Positions 1 to 60,411 of a stretch of 64,000 nt of DNA are shown piece by piece. Numbering within the stretch: the stretch's first letter is position 1; each line of letters opens with the position of its first letter. The position numbers were made by a program, and so were the translations under genes. Below the pieces are notes generated by a model, which worked only from the letters and a program-made list of their open reading frames with translations, was not told where the DNA came from and made no database searches. Origin of the DNA: Cyanophora paradoxa CCMP329 (Eukaryota; Plantae; Glaucophyta); assembly GCA_004431415.1 (NCBI GenBank), contig QPMI01000005.1, positions 124,001 to 188,000 on the forward strand, given 5' to 3'.

Positions 1-3000
1 CCTCGGGGTAAGCCTCCGCGTCAAGGTCGAGCGTCATGACGAAGTAGAAGCGGGAGCCGCGGTTCAGCTCGGACTGCGCGGGGCGGCGCGGGGCGGGGTT
101 AGCGGCGGCCAAGGTCCGAGGAGGAAGAAGAAGCGGGCGGGCCGCGTCCCTTCCAGCCTAGCCCAGCATAGACTGGCCCAGCCCGGCCCAGCCCGGCCCG
201 GCCTAGCCGCGCCCCTTCCAGCCCCTCTGGACCTACTCCTGGCCCGGCCCGGCCCGGCCCAGCCCAGTCCGGCCCACCCCAGCCTAGTCTGGCCCCGCTG
301 ACTGACCTGGACGCCGATGCGGCCGCCCATGAGCTTGACGAGCTTCTTGGAGACGGCGAGGCCCATGCCCGTGCCCCCGTACAGCCGCGTGATCGACGAG
401 TCGGCCTGCGATCGACGAGTCGATCGACGAGTTTAGTGGGCGAGCGAGCGAGCCGCGGTTAGACGACCGGGACGGGCGGACCTGGACGTAGTCGGCGAAG
501 ATGCAGCCGAGGCCCTCCTGGTCGATCCCGATACCCTGCGCGCAGGAAAGAGTCGGGAGGGAAGGAACTAAGCTGAGCTAAGCTAAGCTAAGCTGAGTTG
601 AGCTGAGCTTGGGCTAAGCTAAGCTAAGCTACGCTAGAGCTCGAAGCTAAGCTAGGAGCTCGAAGCTAATGAGCTCCTCAGAGCTCACTCGGCTCAGAAG
701 GGGGCGGGCGGCGCCGGCGGCGGACCGTGTCCTGGACGTCGACGCGGAGACTCTTATAATTAGGTAGTTAGGCTAAGCTATTTAAGCAGCTAAGAATCGT
801 AAGCAATTTAATCTAATCTAATCTCACAGGCTTGAGCCGGCGAAGCGAAGCTAAGCATCTGTTAGGCACAAAGGCGAGCGAGCGGACCGTGTCCTGGACC
901 GTGAAGCTAAGCTATCTAAGCAGCTAAGAATTCTTAGCCCAGGGCTAAGCTAAGCTTAGCTCAGTTAAGCATCTCTTAGGCCTTAGGCACGAAGGAAGCG
1001 CAAGCAGGCGGGCGAGCGGACCGTGTCCTAAGGACATCGATGCTAGGGCCGCTCGCGATTTAGATTAAGATTAAGCTAGGCTGAGCTGAGCTCGAAGCTA
1101 AGCGCCTCTAGGCCGACTCGAATCAGAGAGGGGGCGGGGGGCGTGCGGGGCGGACCGTGTCCTGGACGTCGACGCGGAACGTGAGGCGGCCGGCGAGGGC
1201 CCGCAGCGCCGTCACGTGGACGACCACCGAGCCGCGCTGCGTGAACTTGACCCCGTTGAACGCGAAGTTCGTCCTAAGGGGCGAGGGCGAGAGGCGCGGC
1301 GATCGAGTGAGAGGGACGGGGCAGCGCAGGGGGAGGGGCGGCGCGCGGGCGGGCAGGCGATTATCGTGTCGTTGATTGTAAATAAACGTCATTTTAAGCC
1401 AGTTTCATGCGGGCGGACGCACAGGATCTGCTTGAGGCGGTGTGGGTCCCCGCGCAGGGCCGTCGGCATGGTGAGGGGCACCCGGCACGCGATCTCGATC
1501 GACTTGGCGAACGCCGTCGGAGCCACGACCTGCCGTGCGTAGCCCCGCCGTGTGAGGGGCGGGGCGTGGCGAAGGCACCGACGGCAGGCGACAGCAGCGT
1601 TTAGCTAGGCTAGGCTAGGCGAGGTTAGCTTAAGAGAGGGCCGGCGGTGGGCGGGCAGGGGACGTCAAGCTAAGCTCGAGAGGAAGCCAGAAGAGGCCCG
1701 AGCTATAAATAGCTGCAGGGGAGGGGGGTACGGGGCACCTCGAGGACCTCCTCGATGCAGTCGCGGAGGTCGAAGGGGATGGACTCGAGGACGACCTTCC
1801 CCGCCTCGATCTTGTGCAGGTCCAGCAGGTCTGGGGGGGGGAGGGGGGGGAGGGAGGAGGGTCAGGTGAGGCTCAGGTGGGGCCCGCGGTCAGAGGGCTG
1901 GGAGGGCTCTAGCTAGCCCAGCTAGTGCTTTCGACGGCTAGGTGCGTCTCGGTAGCGCTGGGGCGCGCAGCTATTGCTTCAGGCAGATAGGGAGGGGAAA
2001 GAGAGGGGAAGGGGGGGAAGGAGAGGGGGGGGGGGAGGGGGGCCTAGCTAGGAGGGCGCAGGGGCGCGGAGGGGTACAGCGCACCGTTGACGATGGCGAG
2101 GAGCTGCTCGCCGCACTGGTGGATCGACTGCGTCAGGTCCTGCTGCTCCCCCGTGAGCTCCGTCTCCCGCAGCACTGCGCGAAAAGAGGCCAAGGCCACA
2201 GTCAGAGCGAGCTCGCGGGCGTTCCGCTGGCTTCCTGTGTTGGAGGGGCGGCGCACGGTCGTTCATGCCGAGGATGCCGTTGAGGGGCGTGCGCAGCTCG
2301 TGGACCGTGTACGCCAGGAAGCGGCTGCGCGGAGTCGGGTAAGAACAGGGCGACTCGGAGGAACGCAGAAGAAGAGCGGGGCTCGCTTCTTGGTCTCGTT
2401 GGCGGTCTCGATCTCGATCATGCGGCGCTTCTCAGTGATGTCCTGCCCGACAACGACCACGCCGACCGTGGCCCCCGCAGAGTCGCGCTGCGCCGTCGCC
2501 GAGAGGAGCAGCCGCACGGGACGCCCGGCGCCCTTGCCGACCAGCGTGCACTCGTGCGCCGCGACCTCCTTGCCCTGCATCGCCTCCTCGAGCGCCCGGG
2601 TCGCCCGCTCAACGTCGTCGGGCAGCACGACCGAGGCGAAGGGCATGCCCAGCATCTCGCACTCCGCCCGCTCCGTCACGCGCTCGGCGGCGCGGTTCCA
2701 GCCCGTGACGCGCAGCTCCTCGTCGACCGAGAAGATGGGCGCGTTGGCCGACGTGATGATGCGGCGGAGGTCCTCCGCAAGCACGCGGGCCGCCGCCTCC
2801 GAGGCCTGGATAGCCGCCTCCATGGTCTTGCGCTGCGAGACGTCGCGCACGACGAGGACCTCGATCGTGTTGCCGCCGTACGCGGCGCGCCCGATGGAGA
2901 GCTCCACGGGAAACTCCCGATCCTGCCCGGCGTAACCCATGGTGTCAGAGGAGCCGCATGATGGATATGATCCGCGATAGATAGAGCCGCCGGTCTGTCT

Positions 3001-25579: not shown

Positions 25580-26240
25580 GCCCCGCCCCCGGCCCTGAGG
25601 CTCCTCCGGGGTGCGAGCGGCCTGCCGGCCCTCCCCGCGCCCCCCGCCCGACAGGACGCTCCCCCTCCCCGCCCTTTCAGTTCTGGTCCGGTACCCCCCG
25701 GGCCACCCGCCCCCCGCCCGCCCCTCCGCCGCCGCCGCCTGAGCCGCCTGGCCTCGAGCCCGCCGCCCAAGGCCGTCTGAGCCGTCTGAGCCCCGCCCCC
25801 GGCCCTGAGGCTCCTCCGGGGTGCGAGCGGCCTGCCTTCTTCCCCTCGGCGCCGGATCGCCGACAGCGCCTGCCCTCCTCTCCAGGTGCGCGCACTTGAG
25901 CGTAGGCGACAGAGCACGGGGGGGCGCCACGCCGCTGCTTCCTGGACGGGAGTCCCGCCCGGCGCCCCCGCCACACCGACCGCCGCGCCGCGGCGCCGGC
26001 GCTCCCCGGCCCAACCCGGCCGGCCGCCTCCCTCCCGGAGGGCCCCCCGCCCGCCCCTCCCCACGCCCTTCACCCTACAGGACGCTCTCCTTTCCCGCCC
26101 CTTCAGCTCTGGTCCGGTACCCGCGGGCCGCCCGCCCCCCGCCCGCCCCTCCGCCGCCGCCGCCGTCTGAGTAGCCCGGCCTCGAGACCGCCGATGAAGG
26201 CCGTCTGAGCCGTCCGAGCCGTACGCGTCTGAGCCCGCTC
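25580..26240. repeat. GC-rich local repeats
   Basis: ccccgcccccggccctgaggctcctccggggtgcgagcggcctgcc at 25581 and 25791. caggacgctc..ctggtccggtacc at ~25652 and ~26078. ccgtctgagccgtc at ~25773, ~26201 and ~38660. Confidence 0.75.
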
Positions 26241-35324: not shown

Positions 35325-36500
35325 GCCGCCGCCTCTCCGGCGCCTCGCGACCGGTCAGCTGCGCCTCTTCGCCCGCGTCCTCTCGTCCCACCCATTCATA
35401 TTCATCATGCGGTGGGTGCGCAGGGCCAGCTGCCGGCCGGCCGGCCGGGGCAGGAGGAGGGCGCCTCGTGATCGGGCGGCGGGGCGGAGCTCTGGGAAGG
35501 AAAAGGCCCAGACAAGGACCGTCGAGGTGGGCCCTCGCGATCGAGCTCGTGCCGGGCGGCGCGATCCCCCTCAGGCCTGAGCGGGGCGGGCGCCGCAGGG
35601 CTTCGCCCAGGACGGGGTCCGGATGCTCTAGAAGAAGGTGTGCGCGCGCCTGTACCCCCGTCTCAACTCCAGCTCGCATGAACGCCCTCCGGATCCTCAG
35701 GTCATCGTCGATTCGGAGAGGTCCTGCACGATCGCTGTACCCCAGGGGCGGCCTTCGAAACGCCGTACCCCGCGGGCAGCTGCCGGTGGCGGGGGGCATG
35801 GGGGACTACCGCTGGCTCCGGGGCGAGATCGAGCAGGCCGTGGGGCGAGGCAGGGCGGCCCTGGGCGGCTTCAGCATGGAGGGTGCCCGGCTCCGGACTC
35901 CCGTGCCCCTCGCCCCCGCCCGCGCCTGACACGGCGCCTCAGCTGCAGGCAAGAGCTTCGGCGAGACGAGGAGGGCCGCGAGGGCGCCCCCGGCGACGGC
36001 GACCCCGATCATTGTTAGCACTATAGCTATAGCTAGCCGCGTCTGCATCGCTCCTGTCCCAGCGGGCGTGGGTCCCCTCGTCGCAGACCTCGAGCAGCAG
36101 CCAGGAAAAACAAACTTTGTGGAAACAAGTACCAACTCGAGTCAACAAGTGAACATTCTGATGCTAGCTATAGTAGCGGCCAGGGCAGGACTGGGAGCCC
36201 GGGGGGCCGGGCCGGGCCGGGGGAGAGGGAGGGGGGAAGGCGCCCGAGGCCTCCTCGAGGACAAAGAGAGGGGGGCGAGAGGGGCGGGGGAGGGGAGAGG
36301 GGAGGAAGGGCCCCTCCAGGGCCAGGGGAGGCGGGGGCGCTGACGGCAGGCGAGAGGAAGCGAGCGACCGCCTCGGACGACGGGGGCGAGGCGGGAGGCC
36401 GAGCGGAGGCGGGCGGAGGCGGGGCGGAGGCGCGGGACGGCCCGGGGCCGACGGGGACGAGGCGAGAGGCGGGCGGGGCCCTCAGCGGCGGGCGGGGCCC

Positions 36501-37277
36501 TCAGCGGCGGGCGCCCTCGTCGCAGGCCTCGAGCAGCATCTCGACGCTGACCTTGCGGAACCGCGCCTCGGCGTAGTACGGGATCGCCTTGCGCGCGAAC
36601 ACGAGCCGCAGGTCCTCCGGGATCTCCGCAGCTGTGGGGCGATCAAATTCCGAAGTTCGGTTGGCTGGTGGTTCTGGGGCGGGGGCGCACGGGCGGGGAA
36701 GCGGCAGGACTTCTCGTCGTGGAGGAGAACGACGTTCTTCCCCGCCCGCGCCGCGTGCCGCACCTCGCCCAGCACGTACTGGCTCGCCACGACGTCGACG
36801 TCCCCCTCGAGGGGCGGGCCGGGTCGTGTACATGTGTGTTTATCAGATATCACAATAGCGCTCGGCTAGCTTACAATAGCGTTGTGCACGGACAGCGTCA
36901 CCAGGGCATCGAGGCGGCCGTCTCCGACGGCAGCGCCGTCAGCTGGTTGTTGCCCACCCACAGCTCCTGCAGGGCCTTGAGGCAGCCGATCTCGGGTGGA
37001 AGCGCCGTCAGGCGGTTGTGGCCAACGCCCAGCGCCTGCAGCGCGGTGAGGCGGCCGATCTCCGGCGGCAGCGTCGTCATCGAGTAAACGTCAATCCCAG
37101 CGCCTCCAGTTTTGTCAGCTTGGCGAGCTCGGCGCCCGGGATGCTCCTCAGTTTGTTGTTGCCGAGGTCGAGCACGCGGATGTTCTCCGGCCCCACCCGC
37201 GCGATCGCCGCTGCCGGCCACTCCGTCCACCCCTCCGCCTCTAGGTCCAGCTTCCCTTGCTCCGGGTCCCACCTCAT
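36501..37277 (-). pseudogene. LRR-TIR copy 4: chimeric, deleted and frameshifted
   Basis: The 5' part duplicates module A of copy 2 with 1-bp deletions (~37080, ~36920). It is joined through AT-rich filler (36830-36880) to the C-terminal half of a subtype A TIR (QYVLGEVRHAARAGK..IPYYAEARFR). Confidence 0.85.
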
Positions 37278-42354: not shown

Positions 42355-43900
42355 ATGGCGTCCCACGACGAGGCGCTGGCCCACAGCAAGGTGCGGCGAC
42401 GCGCGTGGCGCTCCCGGTTGACGGGCCGATGGGCCGACGCGCGGCGCTCGCAGCGCGCCGAGGAGCAGGAGATGTTCGACGTGCTGAACGAGGACGGCTC
42501 GCCGATGGTCGACCCGGCGACGGCGCAGCAGGTGCGGGCGGTCTGCTCAAGCGCGATGCGCCGTGCGCCGCGCGACGGCCCGCAGGTGAGGAAGAAGCGG
42601 AAGGAGTGCCACCGCGACGGCAGCTGGCACACGTGCGCGCGCTGACTGCGCCAGAGACCACCGAGCGCTTCTCTGACGGCGCTTCTCGTCCGCGCAGCTC
42701 CGTGCACACGTGGGTCATCAACAAGGTGCCGCCGGCCCATCCCAGGCCATGGCCATCGCCGCCTCGCGCGGCGCGCGGCCGAGCGCCGCGGCGCAGGACG
42801 GCGAGCTGCTGCTGCAGCGGAGGCACCCGACTAAGCAGTCCTACCCAGGTCCCCGCCGGCGCCCGCCGCCATGCAGCGGAGGCGCCGTCCCTCCAAGGCT
42901 CGCCTGACTTGCGCATCTCGTCCCTCTCTGCGCCAGACATGTGGGACATCAGCTCGTGCGCCCGCGGCGCGCCCAACGCCCGCGCCCCGCCTCACGCGCC
43001 CCGCAGCGCCGGGCACGTCTCCGCCGGCGAGGACAGCCTCGGCACGGGTACAGCCACCGGCAGCGCCCGCCTGCCGCGGCGCTGCGCGCCTCTGAGGCGG
43101 CGGCAGCGGTGCGGGAGCTGGAGGAGGAGATGGGTATAGCGCGGCCGGCGTCGGCCTTCCTGCACCTCTTCCGCTTCCCCAATCCCCGGGTACACCACGG
43201 CGGTCCGCGCTCGTACCCCCGGCCCGCCTCTGCACGCGTTCCGCTTATCTCTGTACCCCACCTCGCAGGCTCGCCTTTCCCGCCTGTGCAACTTCTTTTT
43301 CCCTCTGAGCAGCGTACCCCGCAGACGTGCACCTGGTCGAGACCGACGTGCCCTCGCTCCGACTCCCCTCTCCGACTCCGACGTGCCTCGTGACGTCATT
43401 CCATTCCCCCCTTCCCTTCGCCAGACAACGAGTGGAGCGGCGCGCACCCCCCCCCCCCCTCCCCCTACCCCCGCCGCCTGTACCTCCCTTTCCCGCGCCT
43501 AAGCGACGTACCCCGCAGACGTATACCTTGTCGAGACCGAGGCGCCCATCCCCTTGCTCCGACTCCAGGCCACCGAGGTCACGGACGCCAGGCGCGCCTG
43601 TACCCCCTTTATTATGATTTGACAGAGAAGGGAAGTGACCGCGTACCCCCCGCAGGTACGGTAAGTGGTGCGCGGCGGAGAAGCGCTGGCTGGAGAACGA
43701 CCCCACCATGGTACCCCAAGATTCCGCCAACCCGAAGGGGTACAAGATCTTCTTCGACGAGCTGCGGCGGCGGTACCCCCAGGGCGCCTTTGTCCTTACG
43801 GGTCCGCAACCCCCCCCCCCCCCCCCCCGCCCGCCCCCCCGGGTCCTCAGGTGAGCGCCGGCCCGGTGGACCCAGAGAGGCCCTCAGGTGAGCGCCGCGA
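42355..43900 (+). CDS. Nudix hydrolase (IDI/NUDX3-like subfamily), micro-exon rich
   Basis: Spliced CHRDGSWH.SVHTW, GELLLQRR, DMWDISSAGHVSAGEDSLGTAVRELEEEMGI, which matches the Nudix box Gx5Ex7REUxEExGU. 3' end uncertain. Confidence 0.85.
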
Positions 43901-45488: not shown

Positions 45489-48400
45489 ATGGGCACGCCA
45501 CGGAACCTGGCGTGCAGCGAGATCGTCCACATCGCGCCCAAGCCTGCAGCCGAGTCCAATTCCAAATCGCACCCGAGGTCCGCGCGCGCCCCGAGCGGCA
45601 CGCCCGACGCGTTCGCTTCGCCGACGCTCCATTACACGCAGACGTTCGCCGAAGGGAAGGAGATCAGCGCCGTCGCTGAGCCTCTCGCCGCCGAGGCCGC
45701 CGCAGGCGCCAACGTCCTTCTGCCTCTCCTGCTGCGCGCCCTCGTTCCTCGGGCAGGCGGCCGCGGCCAGCACGCCATCGACGTCGCCAGGCCGGTCGTC
45801 GTCGTCCAAAATGGACTTCGGAAGCGGCGCGATGGGCGCGGGGAGCTCGAGCCGCAGGGGCGATGAGAGCGCCTCGAGCCCGGGATCCGGGCCCGCGAGC
45901 TCCTCGCGGGCCCGGGCCTTGAGCTTCTCGGCCTCGGCCTCGTCCGAATCCCGCGGCGGGGCCGACGCGTCGGAGCGCGACCGCGACCTGGCGTGGGTCC
46001 TGCGGACCACGGGCCACCTCATCGCCCGCGCCCTCGACTCGCCCCGCGTGATCATCCGGCGCCTCTCCTCCGCAGCCAGCCCCAGGTTCACTTCGCTTCG
46101 CTGGCGCCTAGCCTTCTCTGACCCGAGTTCCTCAGCCATCAGTCTCGGACGGCCCGGGCCGGTTTAAATTTCTCGAACCCGGCAGCGGAATCCGACGTCT
46201 TCGAGGTCAGTCAGCCGGCCGGCCCGACCCGCCCCGCCCCGCCCGAATCGCTTCTCACTCAAAAACTCGTCCCTTCCTTCGTTCGTTTTCCTTCCCTTAG
46301 TACGTGGCGGAGGGGAAGGGCCTCGTACCCATCGCCGAGGCGCCCCTCCCCGCGCTCCTCCAGCGGCGCCTACGGTCCCTCCTCGACTGCCGGTTCGAAT
46401 CCCCTCGGCTCGAATTAAATTCAAATTCAAACTTCAAACAGCGAGGCGGGCGCGGTCCGAGCGGCGGGCACGCTGGGCGAGCTCCTAGGACCCGGCGAGG
46501 GCTCCACCGGCGAGGAGTACTCCGAGGTGCCGTACCCCCCGTACTCCCCGCCCCGCCCGTCCCGCCTGGATCGGAACCCGATCGGAGAGATAGCCTGAGG
46601 TGGCTTAGGTAGTCTTAACTCTGCCGCCACACCTAAGTCACCTTAGGCTATCTCTCGGCCCGCCCCGATCCAAACCCGATCTCTCCATTTCCTCAATTTC
46701 CGGACAGGCGCTGCGGTTCTGCGAGGCGCACCGGATCGCTTCGGCCGCCGAGGTCGTCTGCGCCGCCGGCGGGCGGCCGGTGGGCCTCCTCACCGTCTAC
46801 TCGGACGGGTGCGCCGAAAGGGAGGGTACCCTCCCTCGAAACTGATTTCCCGTACTCCCCGCAGGCCGCGGGCGCTGCAGGCGGAGGACCGCGCGCTGCT
46901 GGCGCAGGTCGCCGAGTGCGTACCCCCTCCCCCCTCCCTCCCCCCACCTCCCCCGCCCCTCCTCTCTACCTATCTTCGATCTTACGCTTGCGCTATCTAT
47001 CTTACGCTCCGCTCTGCTCGCCTCTATCTATCTATCTATCTATCTCCTTTCTATCCATCTATCTGTTTCCTACGCTCTGCTCGCCTCTGCTGACCGCTTT
47101 CTATTCTTCTTTAGGTACGTGGGCGCCTCGCTGTCGAACGGGACCCTCGTGCACGACATGCAGCTCCAGGCGCGCCCGCCCCGCCCCGCCCCGCCCCGCC
47201 CCAATCTCGAGGACCGCCCGGCGGCCTCCCCGCCCCCCCGGCCCGCCTTTCGTCTCCCGCCCTCCCGCCCCGCCCCGCCCCGCCCAGCCCTCCGCCCTAG
47301 TCTCTTTGCGCATTCTTCTGGTCATCGAGCCGTGCTGCGCAGCAAGCTCTTCCGTCGACATTACCGTCCATTAACTAAATACCAATCAGCTGCAGCAACT
47401 CCAACAACTAAACAACAACCCCCGTGCCGCGCAGCGGGCGGGCCTGGCGCGGCAGCTGCAGGTCGCCTCCGCCAAGCGCGCCATCGTCCGGTCCGCCCCC
47501 TTCCCCTCCTTCCTTCCTTCCTTCCTTCTAGGGAAATCAGTATAGGTTTAGTAATCATCTCTAATTTCTATTATTCTGTGTGTCGGTTGCTTCCTTGCGC
47601 TCTCTCCCCTCAGTTTCCTCCCGCCCGACTTGACGCGAGCCTCTTCTTCCTCCCGGTTCCGTGCTGCAGGGACATACGGAAGAATTTGGACGCCTCCTCG
47701 GTCATCCGCGCCGCCGCCGAGGCCATCGGCAGGGCCGTGCGCCTCTGATCTGATCTCCCCGCCTCCCCACTAGTGCATTTAGGAGCCGGTCCGGCCCTCT
47801 AGCCATAGATCCGAGCCCTTCTCTAGCCTTCTCTCTAGCGGAGCCGAGCGCCCGCCTCGAGCTCTGATTCGATCTCGAGCTGGAGCTCGAGGTCTGGCCC
47901 CGGGCCCAAATCATTTCTGAGGACGGGGCGGCCCGCGGTCGCGCAGGTCGGGGCCGACCGCTGCCTCGTCCAGCAGGTCAGATCCGATCCGATCTGATCT
48001 CATCTGACCTGACCTGACCTGAGCTGACTGACCTTCCGCAGATCTGCCCGCAGCAGGCCCGGGCGGGGAACCCACTTCTCGGGGCGGAGCAGCGGCCGTG
48101 CCCGCCGACTCCGAACCCGTGCTGCCCGCTGGGTGAGGCGGCCGCGGAGTGGGCGGCGGCGGCCTCCTCCTCTGCTTCCTCTGCCGGCGAGGGCGGCTCG
48201 GGATCGCGGGCGGGGGCGGGGGCGGCTGCGCCGCCCGAGTTCCACCAGCGCCGCGTCGCCAGGCTCCTCGAGGTTCGCCTGCCGCTCCACGCCCGCCCAA
48301 GCTCTATAGTCGGCTAGCTTCCTCACCTGGCTCCTCCTGCGCCCCTTCTAAGGAACCGCCCCTGCCCCGCGGCGTCGCTCACGCCCCCGCGCCCCCGGCG

Positions 48401-51400
48401 TGCGCAGAGCGGCGGGGAGCTGCTGGAGGTGCCGGAGGCGGGCGAGGCTCTCCCCGGGGAGGACCCCGCCGACCCCGCCCTCCCCGCCGGTCCGCCCCGC
48501 CGAGGCCCTCGAATTCCTAAGCTAGGCTAGGGCTAGCCTCCTTGTGCTATCGTTGCAGTTTCCCCTCTGCCCTTCTGATCGACCCCTCGTCCTCAGCGCG
48601 GGCGTACTACGCGTCGCTGGGGGCGCGGAGCCTCCTCCTGGTGCCCACGCGGGGCTCGGACGGCCCCAACGGCCTCATCACCGTCGCCAGGCCCGCCCCG
48701 CCCCAGCCCTCCCGCCCCGCGCCTCCCCTTTGCCCCCTTGCTCGCTCTTACTCTCCCCCTCGTTTGCGCAGCGGGCAGGGCGGCCGGGAGTGGACGGCGG
48801 AGGACCAGGATCTCGTCCTCTCCGTCGCCCAGGTGGGGCCTTATATTTAGAGAACCTTATAATAAGAACCTTCAAGCTTAAAACCTTAGAACCTTAGAAC
48901 CTTAGAACCGTAGAACCTTAGAGCCTTAGAGCCTTAGAACCTTAGAACCTTAGAACCTTAGAGACCAGGACCTCGTCCTCTCCGTCGCCCAGGTGGGGCC
49001 TTAGAGAACCTTATAATAAGAACCTTAGAACCTTAGAACATAATTAGAACCGTCGCCCAGGTGGGAAACCCGCAGAAGAATCTTAGCCTTAGAGAACCAC
49101 CTTCAAAAAACTCGTCCCTCCCTCGATCTCTCCCCTCGCCCTCGCTTCTCCCGCGGAGCCTGCAGCTGATCACGAGCCTCCGCTCCCCTCCCCGCAGCAT
49201 GTGGGGATCGCGCTGACGCACGCGCGCTTCCTCGAGCGCCTCGACGCCCAGCACCGCCAGGTCCGCCCCCGCTCTTTAGAACCTTAGAACCTTAAAAGAG
49301 CAGGAGCCTCGCCCTTAGGAACTAGATCCTTAGCGATTCGCCCAGCGCCGCCAGGCACGGCCCCGGCCCACCCCAGAGCCGGAGCCTCGGAGCCTAGCCC
49401 TTAGGAACTAGATCCTTAGCACCGCCAGGCCCGCCCTCGGCCCCCCGCCCCGCCCTGCAAACGCTCACTTCTCCCTCGCCAACTCGATTGCCCCGCTGAT
49501 GCCCCTTTGGCAGCTGCGGGCGCAGAACGAGGCGCTGGTCGTGCAGCTCGAGTCCTCCCGCCTCTCCCGCTCCATCGTCCACGAGGTAAGAAGCCCAACG
49601 GAAGGACCAGAAGAAGAACGCTAAGAGATAGAAAAGGCTTCTAGAGGCTTCGCGGGCTCGGGCCTGATCATGACCGCACCCCTCGCCGCGCCCCTCGCCG
49701 CCCCTCCCCTCCGCCTCCCCTCCCCTGAAGGAGCCTTAAAGACGATAGAAACGGCCTCGCGCGCGCCCTTCAAGCCCCTCACCGCGCCCGCCCCCTCACC
49801 CCTCCTCAGATCCGGAGCAACCTGGAGACGCCGGGGATCCTGGAGACCTCTGCGCGCCTCCTCCGCGAGGCCCTCCGCGCCGACCGCTGCCTGTGCGTCC
49901 GTTGCTTGACTCTCATCAACCAAGCCCGACCCTGTAGTCTAGAGCGTCGACCAGATTGAACTGAAGCTTGCTTTATGCACGCGCAGGCTGCTGCAGCGGC
50001 GGGGCGGACCCGGGGCGCCCTACGAGACCCTCACGGAGTCGGTGGGCGAGGGGGAGGCCGGGGGCGTTGGGCGGCTCGAGGGGCACGCCCTCCCCGCCGG
50101 CCTCCGCGCCCGCCTGGACCGCGTTCTCTCCTCCGCCTCCGCCTCCGCCTCCTCCGCCGCCTCGACCGCCGTCGGCGGCAGGGACGATCGCGACGCGCAC
50201 GTCTGCTGGCCCGAGCCCGCGGGCGCCGACGGCTCGGGTCCATCGGAAGAGGAAGAGGAAGAAGCGGCGGCCTTTGAGCGGGCCGTGGGCGTCGCCTCGT
50301 CCGTCGCGGTCCCGGCGGGGGCCCCGCCCTCGCCCAGGCCCTCGCCCTCGTCCCCGGAGACGCCCCGCGTGAGCGGCGAGGCGGCCGGCGCCGGCCCCGC
50401 CTGCGTGCTCCTCTGCTGGCGCCGCCGCTTCGTCCCCTCCGAGGCGCAGCTCGCCCTCCTGCGCTCCGTCGCCGACCAGGCGCGTTTGCACCTTCACTCT
50501 TGTTAAGATCCTAGTCGTTTTTAAACCTTCGCTCTCATAACCCTTTAGCTGTAGCTGCTCTTATCATTGCTACTCTGCTGCAATTTTCATGCCTCTAGCT
50601 GCTCCACATTGTCCCCATTCAACTTGCCTTTCCCACTACATTCATTCTTTCATCTAGAGCTCTATTAAGACCCTGGTCGCTCCTAACGTTCTCCTCCTCT
50701 CGACAGGTCGGGGTGGCGCTGGTGCACGCGCGGCTCTTCGAGCGGCTGCGGGACTCGCAGGCGACGCTCCAGCGCGAGCTCCTCGTCTCCAACCTCGGCC
50801 GCTCCATCGTCCGGTGCGGAGCTATTAGCTATTAGCTATTAAAGCTATTAGCCTTTGCTATTAGCCTATAAGCTACTATAAACTACTACTATAAGCTACT
50901 ATATAGGGCGCTCCATCGTCCGGTGCGGAGGCCGGAGCCGGCAGCGCAGCCCATCCCGCCGCTGCGCCTTCCCGCTCCATTAGTCTCGCCGCTCCAACTA
51001 AAGCTATTAGCCTTTGCTATTAGCCTATAAGCTACTATAAACGTTCGGGGACACGCCGGGAGCATCCTCATCCTCGGCCCCGGCCTCGGCCCACGCCTTT
51101 CCTGAGGTTGCTGCGCATGGCTGCGCATGTGGCGGCGCCGGCGGCGCCGCAACCCCCCAAATCAGCCTCTTCGATCTCATAAGCCTGTCTTTGCTTTGGT
51201 TTCACGGCTCTAGCTATAGTCTATAGCCAATCCTGCTCACGCCTCGGCCTCATCGATCTCACACGCCTGCATGCGCAGGGACGTGCGCTCGTGCCTGGAC
51301 GCCGTCTCCGTCATGCGCATCGCCGCCGAGTCTGTCGGAAAGGCCGTGCGCCCCTCTCTGAATTTCTTGGACTTCCCCGGCTTGTCCGTTTAGGAGCCGG

Positions 51401-54400
51401 CCCGGCCCTAGCCTTCTCTCTAGCGGGGCCGCGCGCCCGCCCTCCCTTCCCGATCTGATCCCATCCGATCCACTCCGATCTGATCTGACCAACCGCCCTC
51501 GCCCGCTCAGGTGGGGGCCTACCGCTGCGTCCTCATGCGCCTCAACGCCGAGGGTCCCGTCGGCGAGGTCAGATCTGAGTCTAATCTGATCTGATCCGAT
51601 CCGATCCGATCCGATCCGATCCGGTCCGATCCTCGTCCTCGCGCAGTGGGCCCGGGACGGGGCGCTGCGCCTGCCGCGGGACTTCTCGGAGCGGGACCTC
51701 CCCGCCGTCCTCCGCATCCGCGTCCAGTGCGCCCCGCCCCAGATCCAACCCTTCGATTCTTAGAAGCCTTCTCGAAATTAAAGCCTTCAGTAATCACGGG
51801 TGGAATCCGTGTCGCGCGCGCCAGCTCCAACCAGCTCCGACCCTTTAGATTCCGCCTAGCTTCTCCTCCTAGCTTTTCTTACAGAGGTCCATTCCTTTCT
51901 ACTCCGTTATCCAATCTCCCGTTATCCAATCCTCGACTGGGTTCCCCCGCCCGCCTGATCGTGGCCCGGCAGGCGGCACCTGACGTCGGTGTCGGACGTG
52001 CTGGAGCTGCCGGACCTGAGGGCCCCGGTGGGGTACAACCCCGACGAGGTCACCCCCGAGATGCTCGCCGAGGGTCCGACCCCGCCCGGCCCCCGCCCCG
52101 CATCCTCCTTTAAATTCTATTAACAAGCAATAGCAAGATTAGATCTACAAGCTCATTGCTTAGATCCAGATCCGCCCATATACCTACCCGCCCGCCCGCC
52201 CGCGCGTCTGCCCGCCTTATTCTCGGGGCCGGGGCGCAGCGCACGCCTTCTGGAGCTGGCTGAACGTCGTCTCCGCCTTCACCATCTGCCTCCACCACGA
52301 GGTCCCTCCCCCCCCCCCCCCCCCCCCCCTCCCTCTCTCCCTTTCTGAGATCTTAGATCCTTAAGATTAGATCTAGATACTAGTACTTAATCTCATAGCT
52401 CTTTGCCTTCACCATCTGCCTCCACCACGAGGCGAGCCCGCGGGCTGCTCGACTGAGGATCCAGGGCTGAGGGCGGGGGGCGGCGGTTCCTAGGGCGCCT
52501 AACCTAACTAGCCATAGCTTGGTTCTGAATCCGGAGCCGAAGGTCTTGATTGACCATAGCCCTTTAAGCTCCCCATCCGCCTTCCTCTACCACAAAATCT
52601 CTTTTCCCCTCCCTCTCTCTCTCTCTATCTATCTATCTGGAGCAGAGCTGTGGGCGCCTCTCTCCCTCCCCCTCACCCACTCCTTCCTTCTCGGTCAGCT
52701 GGGGGTCCAGAGCTGAAGGCGCCTCTGCGTGCAGGGGACGGCAGAGAGCCGAGAGCGCCCCTCTCCCTCCCTCTCACCCGCTCCTTCCCTCGCAGGGGAC
52801 GGCGGTGGGGGTGCTGTGGGTGGCGTCGGACGTGCGGCGGGAGTGGACGGACCTCGACCGCGCCCTCATCAACTCCATCCGGGACCACCTCGCCATCGCC
52901 GTGCGCCATACTTTGTTGGTTCCTTAGGTATTAATTAGCCAGAGGAGCCAAAGCTTTTAAGGTCTTAATCCGTCGTAGCTTGAGCCCACTCTCCATCCGC
53001 GACCACCTCGATCGCCATCGCCGTGCGCCATACTTTACAACTTGATAGCCAAATTAGCCGTATACGTAGCCTGGTTCTGGATCCGGAGCCAAAGCTCACA
53101 GACTTAATAAGCCATAGCTTTTGAAACTCTCCGTATGCATCCGCGACCGCCTCGCCATCGCCGTGCGCCGTGCTTCAAGCCCGACGCGCGCCCTTGGAGC
53201 CGGCTTGAAGCCTAAAGCTGAACGAAAGCCTGAGCTTGCTTGCTTAAGCTTCCGGCCTTCTGGCAAATTAAAGCAAACAGAGCGCGGATTCCTCTCGAGC
53301 CCGCCTCACCCCGCTCGGCGCCGGCGCGCAGCTGGCGCACGCGCGGGTGCTGGAGACGATGGCGGCCTCCAACGAGACCCTCTCCCGCCAGGCCCGCCCC
53401 CGCCCCCGCCAGACGCCCGTTCCTGGGACGGCTAGCGGGGACGCCGGCCCCTTCTGCCCTCTCCTCCGCACCCGCCACGGGCCCTCCGGGACGGCTAGAG
53501 GGGACCCCCCCCCCCCCCCCCCCCCCCCCGCCTCCAACGAGACCCTCTCCCGTCAGGCCCGCCCCTTCCACCCCTTCCCCCTCTCCCGCCCCCGCCTCCG
53601 CCCCTTAGAGGGGACACCACCTTAAATACCCCCCACCAGCCCGCCCCCGCCCCCGCCCTCCCGCCCCGGCCGCTTCCCCCGGCCGCTTCCCCTCCCCGCC
53701 CCCGTCCCTTCCTGGACGGCTAGAGGGGATGCCGGTCCTTAGACCCTCCCCCGCCAGGCCCGCCCACCCCTCCCGCCCCCGCCCCGCCCCCGGCCCCTCC
53801 CCCGCCCCCCGCCTGGAAGGGGACACCGGCCCTGCGCCGGACGTCCCTTTTTCTGCCTTGCTCCCCCGCCGCCATTGATATCGCCCGGCTCCCCCCCCCC
53901 TCCCCCCTCCCGCGCCTCCGCCTCGCTGCTTTCTCACTCGCTTCCTCACTCTCCCCCGCAGGTGGAGCGGGACCGTGTGCTGAGCGGGATGGTGCAGGCG
54001 GTGCGGGACTCCCTCGACGCCGACGCCATGCTCGACACCGTCCGCCCCCGCCCCGCCCCGCCCCCGCCCCGCCCCGCTTCCGCCCCCGCCCCGCCTTGAT
54101 CTTAGCGAAATCATCCTAGATCCTTCGGGACTCCCTCCTAATTATTTTAGATCTTAGACGCCATGCTCGACACCGTCCGCCCCCGCCCTGCCCTCAGCTA
54201 GATCTTGCATCTGAGATCTTGGATCTAAGATCTGAAGTGGATCTAAGATCTCATTTTAGATTCATCTAAGAGCGCGCTCTTAGACGCCGACGCCATGCTC
54301 GACACCGTCCGCCCCGCCCCGCCCCGCCCCGCCCGCGTCGCCGCCCTTGCTTTTCATGCTTAGATCCTAGGATAAGGCCTTCGTCTTAAATCTTAGAGCG

Positions 54401-57400
54401 CTAGCGCGCTTCTAGCGCTAAAATCTCGTATCTATCCCAAGATATCTTTGCCTTATTCTGATCTTCTGATCCCGCCGGCGTGCAGGCGGCGCGGCTCCTG
54501 GCGGCGAACCTCTCCGCCGACCGATGCCTGACCGCCGCGCTCGCGCCGGCCCCCGGCGGCCCCGCCCCCCTCTCCAGCTCCGCCGGCCCAGCGGACGCCT
54601 CAGACGTCTCCGTCGCGGCGGAGCGCATCGCGGCCAACCTCCGCTCGACGCCGGCGGACCCCGCCGCCGCCGCCCCCGACGCCTCGGAGCTGCAGCTGCA
54701 GCTACAGCTCCCCGCGTTCCTGCGGCGGCGCCTCGCGGCCGCGTGCCTCGGCTCCGACCGCACCGTACGCATGGACGACCTGTCCGCCCTCCTCCCGGGT
54801 GCGTTAGCTCTGCTTAAACTTCAGCTTGAATCAACGGCCCTTTCCGTTTAGCTGAAGGGCCTCCTAGATAATCCTTAAAAGTTAATTGAATGTGTGCGAA
54901 TTCGAATTCGTCCGCTCAATTCTCCCTCAGGCGAGGACCCGGGGGACCCCGAGCTGCCGGAGTTCCGGGCGTGGGCGGAGGGGACGGGGACGCGGGCCGC
55001 CCTCTGGCGCCGCGTCTCCTACCACGGCCTCCTCAAGGCACGCCCGCCCGCCCGCCCGCCCGCCCCGCGCTCTTCTTAGCTACATCGTAACATCTTAAGC
55101 TTATAGCTACATCTTAAGATATTATATCTTAGGACGGGGACGCGCGCCGCCCTCTGGCGCCGCGTCTCCTACCACGGCGTCCTCAAGGCACGCCCCTCTC
55201 GCCCGCCCGCCCGCCCCGCGCTCTTCTGAGCTACATCTTAACATCTTAACATCTTAAGCTTATAGCTACATCTTAACATCTTATATCTTAGGCGTCCTCA
55301 AGGCGCGCCCCCTCGCCCGCCCACCGTGTACACAGCCACATCTTAAGCCGATCTCTCCTCCGCTCCGCTCCCTCCCTCCCTCCCCCTCCTCCACCGCCTC
55401 CCTCCCCCCCTCCTCCTCTTGACTCGCCCCCCGCCCCGCCTCCCCGCAGGGCTTCGTGGGGCTGCACTCGCGCCGGCCGCGGCGCTGGACGGACACGGAG
55501 GCCGACCTCCTCTCCGCCGTCGCCGACCAGCTGTGCGCAGCACTGGGCCCCCCGGATCCTAGGTCCAAGGCTCTCCTAGCTTCTTAGTCGCCGACCAGCT
55601 GTGCGCTTGGCTCAAGTCTTCCTAGACTCTCCTAGCATCTCCTAGCTTCCTAGCCTCTGGGGCCCCCCGATCCTGGGTCCTAAACCCTAGACGGTCCTAG
55701 GCTCCTCCTAAATGGTCGGTCCTTAGACGGACACGGAGGCCGACCTGCTCTCCGCCGTCGCCGACCAGCTGTGCGCTGAAGTTTAACTTATAATTAAGCG
55801 AATTATATTATATCTAGCTAGAGCTTGATTGCTGGAGCCGTCTTCCCGGCGGTCTTTCCTAGGCTCTCCTAGGTTCTTAGAAAGACTCCGAACTCATCCC
55901 CCGCTTCGGCCGAGCTTATAAGAATAATTCCTTAAGAGATGCTGAGTGAGCTCTGGTCCTGATCCCGCGCCGCAGGGGGATCGGGCTGGCGCACTCGCAG
56001 GCGTACGCGGCGGAGCAGGAGCAGCGCCGCCTCCTCGCCCGCCAGAACGACGGTCCGATCCTCGTATCGTATCGTATCGTATCCTACCAGATGCTCAGAC
56101 GTAGCTTCTTCTTTTTCTTCACTCTGCAGAGCTGCGGGGGGCGCGTGCGGAGGCGGAGGCGGCATCGCGCGCCAAGGGCGACTTCCTCTCCGTCGTGACC
56201 CACGAGCTCCGCACCCCCATGCAGGCACGTGCGAATATATATAGCAGGCCCTGTCCACTTAGATGGGCGCGATTCTTAGATGGGCGCGCATCGTTCTCAT
56301 ATATTCTCCCGACCCCACGAGCTCCGCACCCCCAGGCAGGCGCGTGCGAATACAGCAGGCCCGGCCCACTTAGATGGGCGCGCATCGTTCTCATATATCT
56401 AGATGGAGAAGCGGTTAGCTCCGCACCCCCATGCAGGCCCGTTGGCCCGCCGGCCCGGCCATGGCAGCTTTCAGAGAATAGAAAACTAGGCAGGCCGCCC
56501 CATGCGATCGGGCTCCTCCCTCTAAGACCGCTCGGCCTTTTTTCTCTTCTGACCCGCGGGGCCCCGCAGGCGGTCCTCGGGATCTCGCGGCTGCTGCTGG
56601 ACACGGGACTCACGCGCCAGCAAGAGGACTTCGTCCGCATCGTCCTCCAGTCCGGTCCGCGCGCTCCGCGTACCCCCCGGCATCCTCTTCCCCCTCCCCA
56701 TCTCACACCTTCTTTCGCTCGCAGGGAACGCGCTGGTGGACCTTATCGGCGAGATCCTCGACTGCGGCAAGATCGAGCGCGGCACCCTCGGTCCGTCCGT
56801 ACCCTCCACTAGTTCTCGATCCCTTCCAACGCGTACCCCCGACTCAACCCCCCCCTCCCCCCCAAGAGCTGGAAGAGGCGCCGTTCAGCGCGCGCTGCGT
56901 CGTCGAGTCGGTGCTGGACCTGCTCGCACCCTCCGCCGCCATCAAGGCACGCCCCGCCCCGCCCCCGCCCCGAGGAGATAAGGGTTTAGGCTGGAGCTAT
57001 AGAGCTGAAGCCTAGCCCTTCAGCAACGCCAGGCCCCCCCCCCGCCCCCGCCCCGTCCCGCCCCGCTTCTCCTCGCCCCCGCCCCGCCCGATCCTTATAA
57101 TTAGCTGGATCGTTAGGATCTAGATCCTAAGGAGCTAGCTGGATCCTTAGGAACTAGGCTAGACACGCCCCTCCCTAGGCTAGACCCTGCTCGCCCCCTC
57201 CGCAGCCATAAAGGCTCGCCCCTCCGGGCTCTTCCCCGACCCGCCCCGCCCCCGCCTCGCACCGCCCCGGCCCTATGGGGGTAAGCTCCTCCGTCCGAAA
57301 AAGTAACCCCGCACCCCCCGCAGGGCCTGGACCTCGCGCTCTACGTGGACCCGCGCCTCCCGCGCTCCTTCCACTCCGACGCCCGCCGCCTCCGCCAGGT

Positions 57401-60400
57401 ACCCCCCCTCCGTCTTTTCCCCCCCCCCCGCCCCCCGAAAAAAAGAACGTTCTCTCAACCCCTGCCCCAGATCCTCATCAACCTCGTCGGCAACGTGCGA
57501 GGCTCCCCCCCGCTTCTCCCCGCCCCCTTCTCCCCCCCTCCGAGCCTGTACCCCCCGCAGGCGATCAAGTTCACGGACCGCGGCGAGGTATCCATCCGAG
57601 TGGAGGCGGCGCCCCTTCAGATTCAGAGCGACGGCGGCTGCGGCGACGTACCCCCCCGCTCCGAGCTCCGCATCCTCGTCCGCGGTCCGTCGTCCCCTCG
57701 CTTCTCTGTCTTGCGCCCGCCCTCTCTTCTTTTCCTGACGCTCGTGCAGACACGGGCGCCGGCATCCGTAAGGAGGAGCAGGCGCGCCTCTTCGGATTCT
57801 TCGCCCAGGTACCCCCACACACACACTCCTCCCCCCACCCCTCTCTTCATCTGAGCCTCCTCCTTCCCTCTCCTCTCCCCAGGTGGACTCGAGCAAGACG
57901 CGCCGCTTCTGCGGCTCGGGCATCGGTCTTTTCCTCTCTAAGGTCAGCCTCTCGGCACCCAAGACGCACATTCAAACCGTCCAACTCACTCTTCGCTCGC
58001 ACTCCCAGGCGCTTTCGTCGCTGCTGGGCGGGCAGCTGACGTTTTTCTCGGCTGGCCCGGGCCACGGCTCCACCTTCACGCTCGCCCTACCCCTCCGCGT
58101 CGTCGTACCCCCCGATCCCCCGGTCATCCTCGGCCCCCCCCTCTCCTTCTTCCCCCCCTCGAACTTCGCCTCCGCCTCGGCCTCCGCCTCCGCCGCGGCG
58201 CCGACGGTTCACATCGCGCTGGCGAACGGGACGAACCGCGAAATGGTGGCTGCCCACGCCGCCGGCTGCGGCCTGGCGGTCGACCCGAGGCCGTACCCCT
58301 CCCGCCGGGCCCTCCTCGAGGCCCTCGCCGCCCGCCCGGAGCCCCGCGCCCCCGCGCTCGCCTTCCTCGACATCGAGGTACCCCGGCCCCTCTTCTTCCC
58401 CCACCCCCATCCGCCCCCGTACCCCTCTGAAGGCGAGGCGCGGCATGCAGGCGGCGCGCGGGGACAGCGACACTGAGGGCGAATCGGCGCCCGAGGATGG
58501 GGGGGTACCGAGCCCACGATCCCTGTGGCGCCCGAGCGACCCGCCGCGGGGCGCCTGCGAGGCGGCTCTCGAGGGGGTACGCTGGGTCTACCTGGCCCCG
58601 TCCATCCCGGAGCCGGCGCTCTCCGTCCCGGCGCCGGACCTGCCCCGCGCGCCGGCCTCGGGCGCGCCCTCACCCATCCTCGGCGTGTCAGCGGCGGCAG
58701 CGGCGCGGGCGCCGGCGCGGTGCGACTCGCCCGTCGCGATCATCGGATGCGCCGCCCGCCGCGGGGGTGCCTTCAAGCGCCTCCGGGGCGCGCCCGACGC
58801 GGACGAAGGCGACGAGAGCCCGCCCCGCCCGCGGGCGCGCCAGCGGACGGGTACGGCGGAGGGATCCGAAGCCATCGCGCGCCACTCGCGCCCCGCGGTG
58901 CTGCAGAAGCCGTTGCGGGTGCGGCCGCTGGTCCGGGCGCTCCGGGGCGAGTGTGAGCCCCAAAGCGACGACGAGGAGGAGGAGGAGGAGGGAGGCCGCC
59001 GCCGGCCCCGCGGGGGCTTCGCCACTCTAATGACCCGGCGCCTGGCTCCACCCTCGGGCGCCGCGGCGGGGCCGGGGCGCGGCGGGTGCCCCGCCCCGCT
59101 GGACGGCTCGTGCGCGGGCAGCGACTCCGGGGCCGATCGGAGCGACTCGGCCGAGGAGCGCGAGCGGCCGCCCTCGCGGGGGGGTACCGAGTGCGCGAGC
59201 CCGAGCCCGGCGGCAAGCCTCGCCGGATCCGGATCCGGAGCCGGGTCCGGATCCGGGCAGCTGCGCGTGCTGCTTGCGGAGGACAACCCAATCAACGCGA
59301 AGATCGTTCTCCTCATGCTCCGCAAGGTGAGTTTCTATAAGCGTTTTATAATTAGGCTTTAGAGAGCTTTTAGAGCTAGCGCTCTCGTTCCGGGGATCCT
59401 CTTTAAAGCTTTCATAATAAGGCCGCCTGCCGGCGCTAAAGATCGTTCTCCTCATGCTCCGGAAGGTGAGCGGCGCTCAAGCTTTCTATAATTAGGCCGC
59501 CCCACCCAGGGCTCTCGCCCCAACGTCAACTCAGAACCCCGCACGAAACCTAGACGAGATTAGATAATTCCCCCTCCCCTTCTCCCTTCCCCTTCTCCTC
59601 ATCCCCTTCCCCCCCCCCCCCCCCCCCCCCCCCCCCTTCCCCCACGCCCCCGCCCCTCCCCCCCGGTGCTGATTCCGTTGCCCCGGAAGCTGGGGTACGC
59701 GCTCTCGCCCGGCGACGTCGTGGGCAACGGGGAGCTGGCTCTCGCCGCCGTCGAGAGGGCCGCCGCCGCCGGTACCCCCTACCACGTCCTCCTCCTCGAC
59801 TGGCAGATGTGCGCCCGTACCCCCTCTTCTCTTCTCCCCCTCCTTCCTTTCCTCTAGATCACTGCGGCTGCGGCTTCTTCCCTATCACCTTCGATCTAAT
59901 CCTATCGCGAGCGTGTTCTTCTTGCATTTTGGATCTAATCTCTGATCTATTTATAGGCCGGTACTGGACGGGCTCTCGGCGGCGCGGGCGCTCGTCGCGC
60001 GGCACCCGAAGGCCGACCCCCGCCGGCCCCTGATCGCCATGCTCACCGCCAACGGTACGAATTTCGATTTTCAAATTTTTGACTTCAAATTCGAATTCTA
60101 ACGGCCGGCGCCTTTCAGCGGCGCGCTCGGACCGGGACCTGTGCCTTTCCTCGGGCATAGACGCCTACCTATCCGTGCGCCTTATATAAAGCTTAACTAG
60201 CTTAACGCTCTTCTAGATTTACGTCCTCTGACTTCCTTTCTCTTAATAGAAGCCGATCCGGATGGAGGACCTGGCGGCGACGCTCGGGGACTTTGCGCGG
60301 CGCGCGCAGCGGCGGCGCGCCCGCCAGCGGCGCTCCCTCTCCTCGTCCCCGGCGCCGGCTTCTCCTCCCCCGGGGGCGGCCCCCGAAGTCGTTTTCTCCG

Positions 60401-60411
60401 CCTCCGACTGA
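45489..60411 (+). CDS. Multi-GAF (about five) hybrid histidine kinase with HATPase, degenerate receiver and C-terminal receiver; roughly 40 exons
   Basis: Repeated IRxxLD..ADRC..RxWTxxExxLLxxVADQ..AL.HA GAF motifs. H-box FLSVVTHELRTPMQ, NLVGNAIKFT, DTGAGI, GSGIGL. Receiver LLAEDNPIN..LLDWQMP..LTAN..KP. Start uncertain (45489 or 45811). Confidence 0.9.
48880..48961. repeat. Intronic 8-bp tandem repeat (ACCTTAGA)n
   Basis: About ten consecutive units, with more scattered copies up to ~49290. Confidence 0.9.
51570..51632. repeat. Intronic (GATCC/GATCT)n pentamer microsatellite; similar tract at ~47980-48020
   Basis: Directly visible. Confidence 0.85.

Follow-up and report, generated by a model that had tools for sequence, protein, structure and literature searches.

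The stretch analysed here (the window) comprises 64,000 nucleotides (nt) of the Cyanophora paradoxa CCMP329 genome, positions 124,001 to 188,000 of contig QPMI01000005.1 (assembly GCA_004431415.1). The window is GC-rich, at 65-72%, and its plus strand carries, at about 45.5-60.4 kb, a gene with many introns. The translation of this gene contains repeated GAF-type modules, a histidine-kinase core with H, N, G1 and G2 boxes, and a receiver domain; Pfam searches with single exons return HisKA and GAF matches, all of them weak. The published C. paradoxa genome has 67.6% GC, 9.2 introns per gene and a mean intron length of 86 bp (PMC6704402), and the GC content and intron richness of the window are consistent with these figures. 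Our subject is a set of internal repeats in the introns of this gene, hereafter the GAF kinase gene. Twelve of them contain copies of the end of the upstream exon together with its donor site, and these copies are referred to as echoes.

The gene model was produced with our own exon-chain script and was then corrected by hand and with spliced RNA contigs. The modelled part, 46301..60411 with the stop at 60411, has 44 exons and 43 introns, the latter being 35 GT-AG and 8 GC-AG. No consistent model was obtained for the first 0.8 kb at the gene's 5' end (about 45489-46300), which lies outside all counts given below. GC-AG introns are very common in 46301-60411 (8/43), and four of them are confirmed by RNA contigs (donors at 53392, 55038, 56225 and 56947). 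The donor consensus of the gene is approximately G-Y-N-C-G, with A at +3 in the GCACG type, and GTACCCC is also used as a donor (57399, 57809 and 58378).

RNA support comes from three sequencing runs, presumed to be RNA, whose spliced contigs extend over 51750-57700 and define nine introns; joint ambiguities of one to four bases were resolved before their coordinates were set. Seven of the nine carry echoes, and in every one of these splicing connects the first donor with the true acceptor. The remaining two, 54799-54930 and 56053-56129 on the plus strand, have none. Neither an echo exonlet nor a product of an echo donor was found in the spliced RNA contigs, which show the dominant stable product only and would miss minor or decay-prone products of echo donors. 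For the five other echo-bearing introns, the bounds rest on reading frame and domain logic. Read-through from the real donor meets an in-frame stop within the intron in 11 of the 12 echo-bearing introns, and TAG and stop-rich sequence follow directly after the real donors. Given these in-frame stops, the use of an echo donor would yield a decay-prone mRNA.

Echoes were identified by local alignment. The query for each intron was the end of the preceding exon (up to 60 nt) together with the first 12 nt of the intron, the target was the remainder of that intron, and a copy of the exon end and its donor was accepted at a score of at least 17. The scan yields 20 copies in 12 of the 43 introns. All of them cross the exon/intron junction, each consisting of 11-56 nt of exon end followed by the donor, and all are in direct orientation, 68-267 nt from the preceding junction. 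The first-pass annotation had listed 19 echo places, all of which are recovered, and one more is found at 49339. Its description of the copies as about 10-55 nt long, slightly diverged and present in more than 10 introns agrees with the lengths and number found here and with a divergence of 4.2% from the source exon (18 of 425 positions). Its further statement, that each copy ends in the same GT or GC donor, is true generally, but intron 13 has GC in place of GT and the donor is lost in the echo at 52405.

Several controls set this pattern apart from background. When the same exon-end queries are run against the other 42 introns, only 1 of 1806 tests reaches the threshold (0.06%), with a maximum score of 17.5. 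There are no inverted copies, reverse-complement queries scoring at most 10, and no copies of exon ends in the upstream intron, where the top score is 15. Queries with the acceptor junction (12 nt of intron and the 60 nt of exon that follow) against its own intron likewise detect no copy in the GAF kinase gene, scoring 12 at best. Hence, 12 introns have copies on the donor side versus 0 on the acceptor side (two-sided sign test, P of about 5e-4). Furthermore, the last 12 nt of each intron joined to the start of the next exon give no copy; the echoes are internal and do not lie at the 3' end of the intron. Chance similarity or low complexity as the origin of the echoes is excluded for practical purposes.

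The same holds for assembly error, which the first-pass annotation had wanted checked against reads. Sixteen DNA runs contain 93-96% of the sampled 31-mers of the region. The echoes are also present in another DNA run, X1, whose contigs span eight of them with their flanks at 0 differences (for example 52348-53494 and 55509-55777). The runs may be from the same strain, and the exclusion does not extend to strain-specific variation.

All twelve echo-bearing introns are on the plus strand, and they are described here in order, the sequence that accompanies the copies being called filler. Intron 12 (48833..49197, 365 nt) has echoes at 48963-49003 and 49050-49065, which reproduce the exon from 48803 and from 48822, respectively, to 48832, each with the donor. 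Around the first echo the homology reaches 79 nt into the intron with a period of 160, and the filler is a short tandem repeat of 8 nt. In intron 13 (49261..49513, 253 nt) the echoes are at 49339-49365 and 49418-49439, both with GC versus the real donor GT, and a filler segment at 49303-49334 is copied at 49389-49420. Intron 17 (50814..51278, 465 nt) contains one echo, at 50906-50930, and a duplication of filler only, in which 50840-50883 matches 50999-51042 exactly. The single echo of intron 22 (52302..52795, 494 nt), at 52405-52432, retains 27 nt of exon and only the first G of the donor, which is otherwise lost.

The next introns are confirmed by RNA. Intron 23 (52901..53331, 431 nt) has echoes at 52991-53036 and 53138-53175, which share one synonymous difference from the exon. 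Intron 24 (53392..53961, 570 nt), a GC-AG intron, has them at 53530-53565 and 53741-53777. Intron 25 (54040..54485, 446 nt) has them at 54157-54186 and 54283-54334, and its filler includes, at 54126-54137, a 12-nt patch from further upstream in the exon. Intron 27 (55038..55449, 412 nt, GC-AG) gives the clearest picture of a repeated unit: the 150 nt at 54982-55131 recur at 55132-55290 with 142 of 150 positions identical, so that echo heads stand at 55132 and, for a third and shorter unit, at 55291-55325. Intron 28 (55533..55975, 443 nt) carries echoes at 55587-55606 and 55726-55776, the latter identical at 50 of 51 positions. The exon-chain script had initially called part of this second echo (55727-55770) an in-frame exon, which the RNA contigs contradict.

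Also confirmed by RNA are intron 30 (56225..56569, 345 nt, GC-AG), with echoes at 56314-56382 and 56417-56442, and intron 33 (56947..57323, 377 nt, GC-AG), whose echo at 57179-57243 is the most diverged of all (51/60). The filler of intron 33 at 57103-57157 is palindromic, being made of alternating inverted units of about 20 nt with arms 84-86% complementary, and resembles a product of snap-back synthesis. Finally, intron 40 (59327..59689, 363 nt) has one echo at 59439-59497.

With longer queries, the homology mostly extends past the donor into the intron, by up to 94 nt. The exon and intron parts of the units measure 30+79 nt (48803/48963), 56+94 nt (54982/55132), 26+47 nt (56199/56314), 24+30 nt (54016/54283) and 27+31 nt (59300/59439). 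The fillers of consecutive units are homologous to one another in introns 12, 27 and 30 by alignment, and in introns 23 and 28 by eye. Because the homology continues into the intron and successive fillers are homologous, the echoes are not lone scraps of exon; they are the heads of two to three tandem units, each made of exon end, donor and 5' intron sequence, in an array that starts within the exon. The step from junction to junction is 68-267 nt, with a median of about 131. Where the echoes of one intron share differences from the exon, as in introns 23 and 27, either a later round copied an echo or the exon changed once afterwards.

The presence of echoes is tightly linked to intron length. 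All 11 introns of at least 345 nt carry them, as opposed to 1 of the 32 shorter introns (Fisher, P=2e-9), and the median length is 421 nt with echoes versus 81 nt without. The acceptor lies a median of 174 nt beyond the last echo junction. The long introns of the GAF kinase gene thus owe their length to these tandem units. Palindromic hexamers are in moderate excess in the long introns (174 vs 116 expected).

The left edges of the copies show a bias of their own. The first-pass annotation held that most copies are preceded by (t)tag, and TAG is indeed enriched, adjoining or spanning the left edge in 11 of the 20 echoes, whereas placement at random would give 1.6 within these introns and 3.0 within AT-rich filler (P<5e-5). 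However, in 10 of these 11 cases the copy itself supplies the G or AG, and only the preceding letters, TTA or TT, lie outside it. TA precedes 29% of the G's in filler and 7 of the 11 copies that start with G (P=0.019); the echo pairs of one intron share a joint, and the cases behind all of these TAG statistics are accordingly not independent. Much of the pattern is accounted for by filler composition together with one or two shared bases at the joint. At many left edges 1-4 nt are common to both sides (G or AG; CCGT at 49050), in copies that are decayed and in pairs that are not independent.

Two further interpretations of the TAG were considered and rejected. As a purpose-built acceptor of an exonlet it fails on three counts: the G or AG is copied, the implied exonlet lengths are off-frame, and the RNA contigs contain no exonlet. 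A transcription-oriented CTTAG motif was suggested by an excess in the sense direction (42 vs 9; 12 introns vs 3, P=0.035), but the excess of CTTAG over CTAAG fits with the introns being generally pyrimidine-rich (C 3499 vs G 1767).

The spare donors that the echoes carry have changed at particular positions. Donor positions +2 and +3 differ from the source in 7 of 38 cells (Fisher, P=0.002). GT has become GC in both echoes of intron 13, and the A at +3 is lost in 4 of the 5 echoes of the GCACG type. Since the excess changes sit at the two positions that modulate donor strength, this points to pressure against the use of echo donors and not for it.

We consider that the echoes are probably scars of serial local duplication across the 5' splice junction, tolerated since the upstream donor stays in use, and we put the probability of this reading at about three in four. 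The first-pass annotation had offered, as one of its two readings, a mutational process that re-copies the donor junction, and this fits the tandem units, the link to intron length, the first-donor use seen in RNA and the decay at +2/+3. Its remark that no named feature of this kind was known is too strong, as both duplications of splice junctions and intron repeats from staggered breaks have been described (PMC3443670, PMC4202315). The echoes have no mention in the C. paradoxa genome paper (PMC6704402), and text searches found no description of them for this species. The feature is a dense, donor-side-only form of a known route of intron growth.

We infer a DNA-repair or replication mechanism, a filter by selection and the following order of events. 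A segment reaching from 11-56 nt inside the exon to some tens of nt inside the intron would be duplicated in tandem, sometimes together with additional filler. The source of the copy could be staggered-break fill-in or end-joining, replication template switching with 1-4 nt of microhomology, or snap-back synthesis, and in further rounds an existing echo would often have been the template in place of the exon. If the first donor kept pairing with the true acceptor, the mRNA would be unchanged; the copied exon end, the spare donor and the filler would then become intron, which would grow from roughly 85-360 nt to 250-570 nt. Duplication of an acceptor would place a complete 3' splice site upstream and break the mRNA. 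Such events would be removed by selection, which would explain why copies are found on the donor side only. The bases shared at the joints, the patch at 54126-54137, the inverted units at 57103-57157 and the palindromic hexamers are compatible with break, fork and snap-back processes, and do not discriminate among them. Tandem duplications due to polymerase theta, as seen in TONSL mutants, were also considered; they measure 25-300 kb (PMC13031629) and were rejected for this mismatch in size.

Several observations weigh against this reading or are left unexplained by it. The exon part of a unit never exceeds 56 nt, even for an exon of 894 nt, and its share of the unit does not rise above 0.4 in any of the 12 first-order events. 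Because it is always short, uniform random breakpoints do not fit, and the reading requires that long exon copies be selected against in addition, or that the process be anchored near the donor. Over +1..+6, 13 of the 20 echo donors still match the real donor exactly, and the preference for the upstream donor is not explained. At donor positions -2, -1, +1, +4 and +5, 0 of 98 cells are changed where about 4 were expected, a count biased by the fact that local alignment stops at mismatches; these unchanged invariant positions could reflect some constraint on the echo donors. The excess of TTA|G at left edges persists after correction for filler composition (P of about 0.02), and a modest genuine preference for such joints may remain.

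Duplication of splice sites has precedents. In the Rogers model, as outlined in a review (PMC3443670), an intron is gained by duplication of a segment bearing AGGT, and the same review cites the survey of internal gene duplications by Gao and Lynch (2009). As in internal or tandem splice-site duplication, the GAF kinase gene has local tandem copies of a splice site of which one is used, the exon copy being intronic and the protein unchanged. Three hallmarks of duplication are found here: the copies are direct and nearby, they span the boundary into the intron, and the original donor is the one used (in seven introns by RNA). Internal echo units with AG|GY at their end are built exactly like a Rogers-type intron. 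However, an existing intron has been lengthened in our case, and its true 3' end is not a copy of the exon; in addition, the duplications are serial (two to three units), confined to the donor side and present in every long intron of the gene. Daphnia provides a second parallel. New introns there have direct repeats, from staggered double-strand breaks, in 61% of cases (PMC4202315), and internal direct repeats together with repeats of the adjacent exon end are likewise read there as break-repair scars that passively lengthen introns (PMC4202315). The copies in the GAF kinase gene differ in being 16-150 nt long, in including the donor, in lying inside the intron and in recurring.

Among the alternatives, the one that survives best holds that duplication creates the sites and splicing exploits them. 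The first donor would be joined to the AG of an echo, which would remove a unit of 70-270 nt and recreate the exon-end/donor junction, and the step would then be repeated. A long intron would be a chain of normal-sized introns with zero-length exons between them, so that 400-600 nt are removed as two or three ordinary-sized introns. In keeping with this, 13 of the 20 echoes retain an intact AG|GY junction, in which an acceptor and a donor are juxtaposed. For 12 of these 13 the acceptor scores have a median of 5.3, compared with 8.0 for real acceptors and -3.4 for other intronic AGs, and six echo junctions fall inside the interquartile range of real acceptors. The lengths of the units correspond to those of ordinary introns of the gene. 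Exons ending in AG are found at 8 of the 12 echo-bearing introns versus 11 of the 31 others (P=0.09), and for such exons any order of splicing would yield the correct mRNA.

Nevertheless, seven echoes of similar appearance (in introns 17, 23, 25 and 28) derive from exons that end in CG, CC or CT and, since an AG is missing from the source, could not function as zero-length ratchet sites. The AGs at real exon ends themselves receive rather high acceptor scores (median 2.2, several at 7-10), so that the acceptor-likeness of the echoes is largely inherited from C-rich exon ends. Echo donors, moreover, tend to weaken at +2/+3. The echoes do resemble the zero-nucleotide recursive splice sites of Drosophila, in which an intronic acceptor and donor are juxtaposed and splicing recreates the 5' splice site. 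Those ratchet points, however, are conserved sites in very long introns, with a strong pyrimidine tract and a GTAAGT-like donor (10.1101/006163, PMC8605326), whereas the introns here measure 253-570 nt and AG is lacking in a third of the echoes. No splicing intermediate was seen, but the contigs are incapable of showing one. The alternative reading of the first-pass annotation, recursive or ratchet splice points and cryptic micro-exons, is not borne out by the RNA contigs, which contain no exonlet and no echo-donor product. It does not fit the 7 of the 20 echoes whose source exons lack a final AG, but may still apply to the 13 AG|GY junctions, about half of them acceptor-like. We regard recursive removal as improbable, and it is similarly doubtful that junction duplication has made these introns ones that are spliced in steps.

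Selection for the echoes as decoy donors is harder to sustain. The spare donors and the stop-rich filler would be kept to bind U1 and tune splicing, or to divert transcripts to nonsense-mediated decay. The absence of changes in the 98 invariant donor cells and the TAG and stop-rich filler right behind the real donors are what such a function would leave. However, the substitutions cluster at +2/+3 and act to weaken the donor, one echo (52405) no longer has a donor, the number and position of echoes vary freely among introns, and no echo-donor product appears in the RNA contigs. The neutral scar model covers the same facts with fewer assumptions, and we judge a selected role to be very unlikely.

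An origin from a mobile element, such as an introner, a small non-autonomous transposon or a retroposon inserted near the donor, is given equally little credence. The echoes would then be long target-site duplications, and the TTA|G edge would be a preference of the target or the tail. The layout of copy, filler and copy does resemble a target duplication around an insert, short-repeat tails adjoin the downstream copy in intron 12, and TTA|G edges are enriched. Introners are similar in producing direct repeats that involve a splice site and in representing a genome-wide process in some algae (PMC9860276). The fillers, however, differ among introns. BLAST searches with the introns of at least 150 nt, all 12 echo-bearing ones included, found only matches to neighbouring or paralogous introns and no dispersed copies of filler within the 64-kb window, a small sample of the genome. 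No dispersed family is seen within the window, no terminal inverted repeats bound the fillers, and the duplicated length of 16-150 nt is far from the fixed 3-9 bp of introner target duplications (PMC9860276). The repeated material is the gene's own junction, and several cases are pure tandem duplications without an insert (for example 54982-55290). A target preference of the PIF/Harbinger type (CTTAG with TTA duplication) was considered and set aside, as no element here supports it.

Assembly error or chance similarity can be dismissed as a practically negligible possibility: assemblers can collapse or expand short near-identical repeats and the region is GC-rich and of low complexity, but the 16 DNA runs, the exact X1 contigs over eight echoes and the non-cognate rate of 0.06% speak against both.

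Intron lengthening and the origin of splice sites have mostly been inferred from rare isolated cases. Here one gene presents 12 independent introns with 20 copies at about 4% divergence, a donor-side bias, a short exon part and a link to intron length. If the feature proves widespread in the genome, the organism could serve to measure the rate and mechanism of junction duplication, and would offer a natural system for studying how the spliceosome chooses among identical tandem donors and whether such sites are used stepwise. Should the introns in fact be removed in steps, donor-side duplication would be intrinsically harmless, which would explain why long introns, in a genome whose introns average 86 bp, are tolerated only in this build. 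On the practical side, the echo units resemble small exons, and automatic gene models in this genome may call false exons or place donors wrongly.

The rest of the window holds far fewer non-coding local repeats than the GAF kinase gene, yet echo-like cases occur. On the minus strand, another histidine-kinase gene shows the same pattern, which also speaks for the duplication reading: an intron of 620 nt (536..1155, with predicted exon bounds) contains the end of its upstream exon with the donor three more times, at 1043-1016, 899-882 and 748-719. Within the copy at 1043-1016, an inserted TT creates a TTAG. A 25-nt direct repeat of 96% identity (36075-36099 and 36514-36538) reads on the minus strand as an exon end with a possible GC donor and its copy about 440 nt downstream; this 36538/36099 repeat is likely a donor echo in a minus-strand gene of the LRR-TIR cluster. 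In a neighbouring plus-strand gene, 43313-43353 and 43507-43547, 194 nt apart, duplicate the 3' end of an intron (CGTACCCCGCAG) with about 30 nt of exon start. The pair could be an echo on the acceptor side or reflect tandem duplication of an exon, and is the only acceptor-type case seen in the window. Direct repeats rich in G are also found in the LRR-TIR cluster, at 25580-26220; their periods are about 210 and 426 nt, and one pair of 47 nt, at 25580 and 25790, is exact.

Some further features of the introns were recorded. Introns 7 and 18 of the GAF kinase gene (47778-47856 and 51389-51441) follow exons of paralogous GAF modules, share stretches that are 94-95% identical and are without echoes; the shared stretches go back to an internal duplication of the module together with its intron. 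A compact motif at intron 3' ends consists of CGTACCCC and then (C)GCAG; it recurs at 46850-46864, 57305-57323, 57545-57560, 43297-43318, 43500-43518 and 43640-43656, and may combine branch point, C-tract and acceptor in one element. Elsewhere in the GAF kinase gene, introns have CTSAY-type branch motifs.

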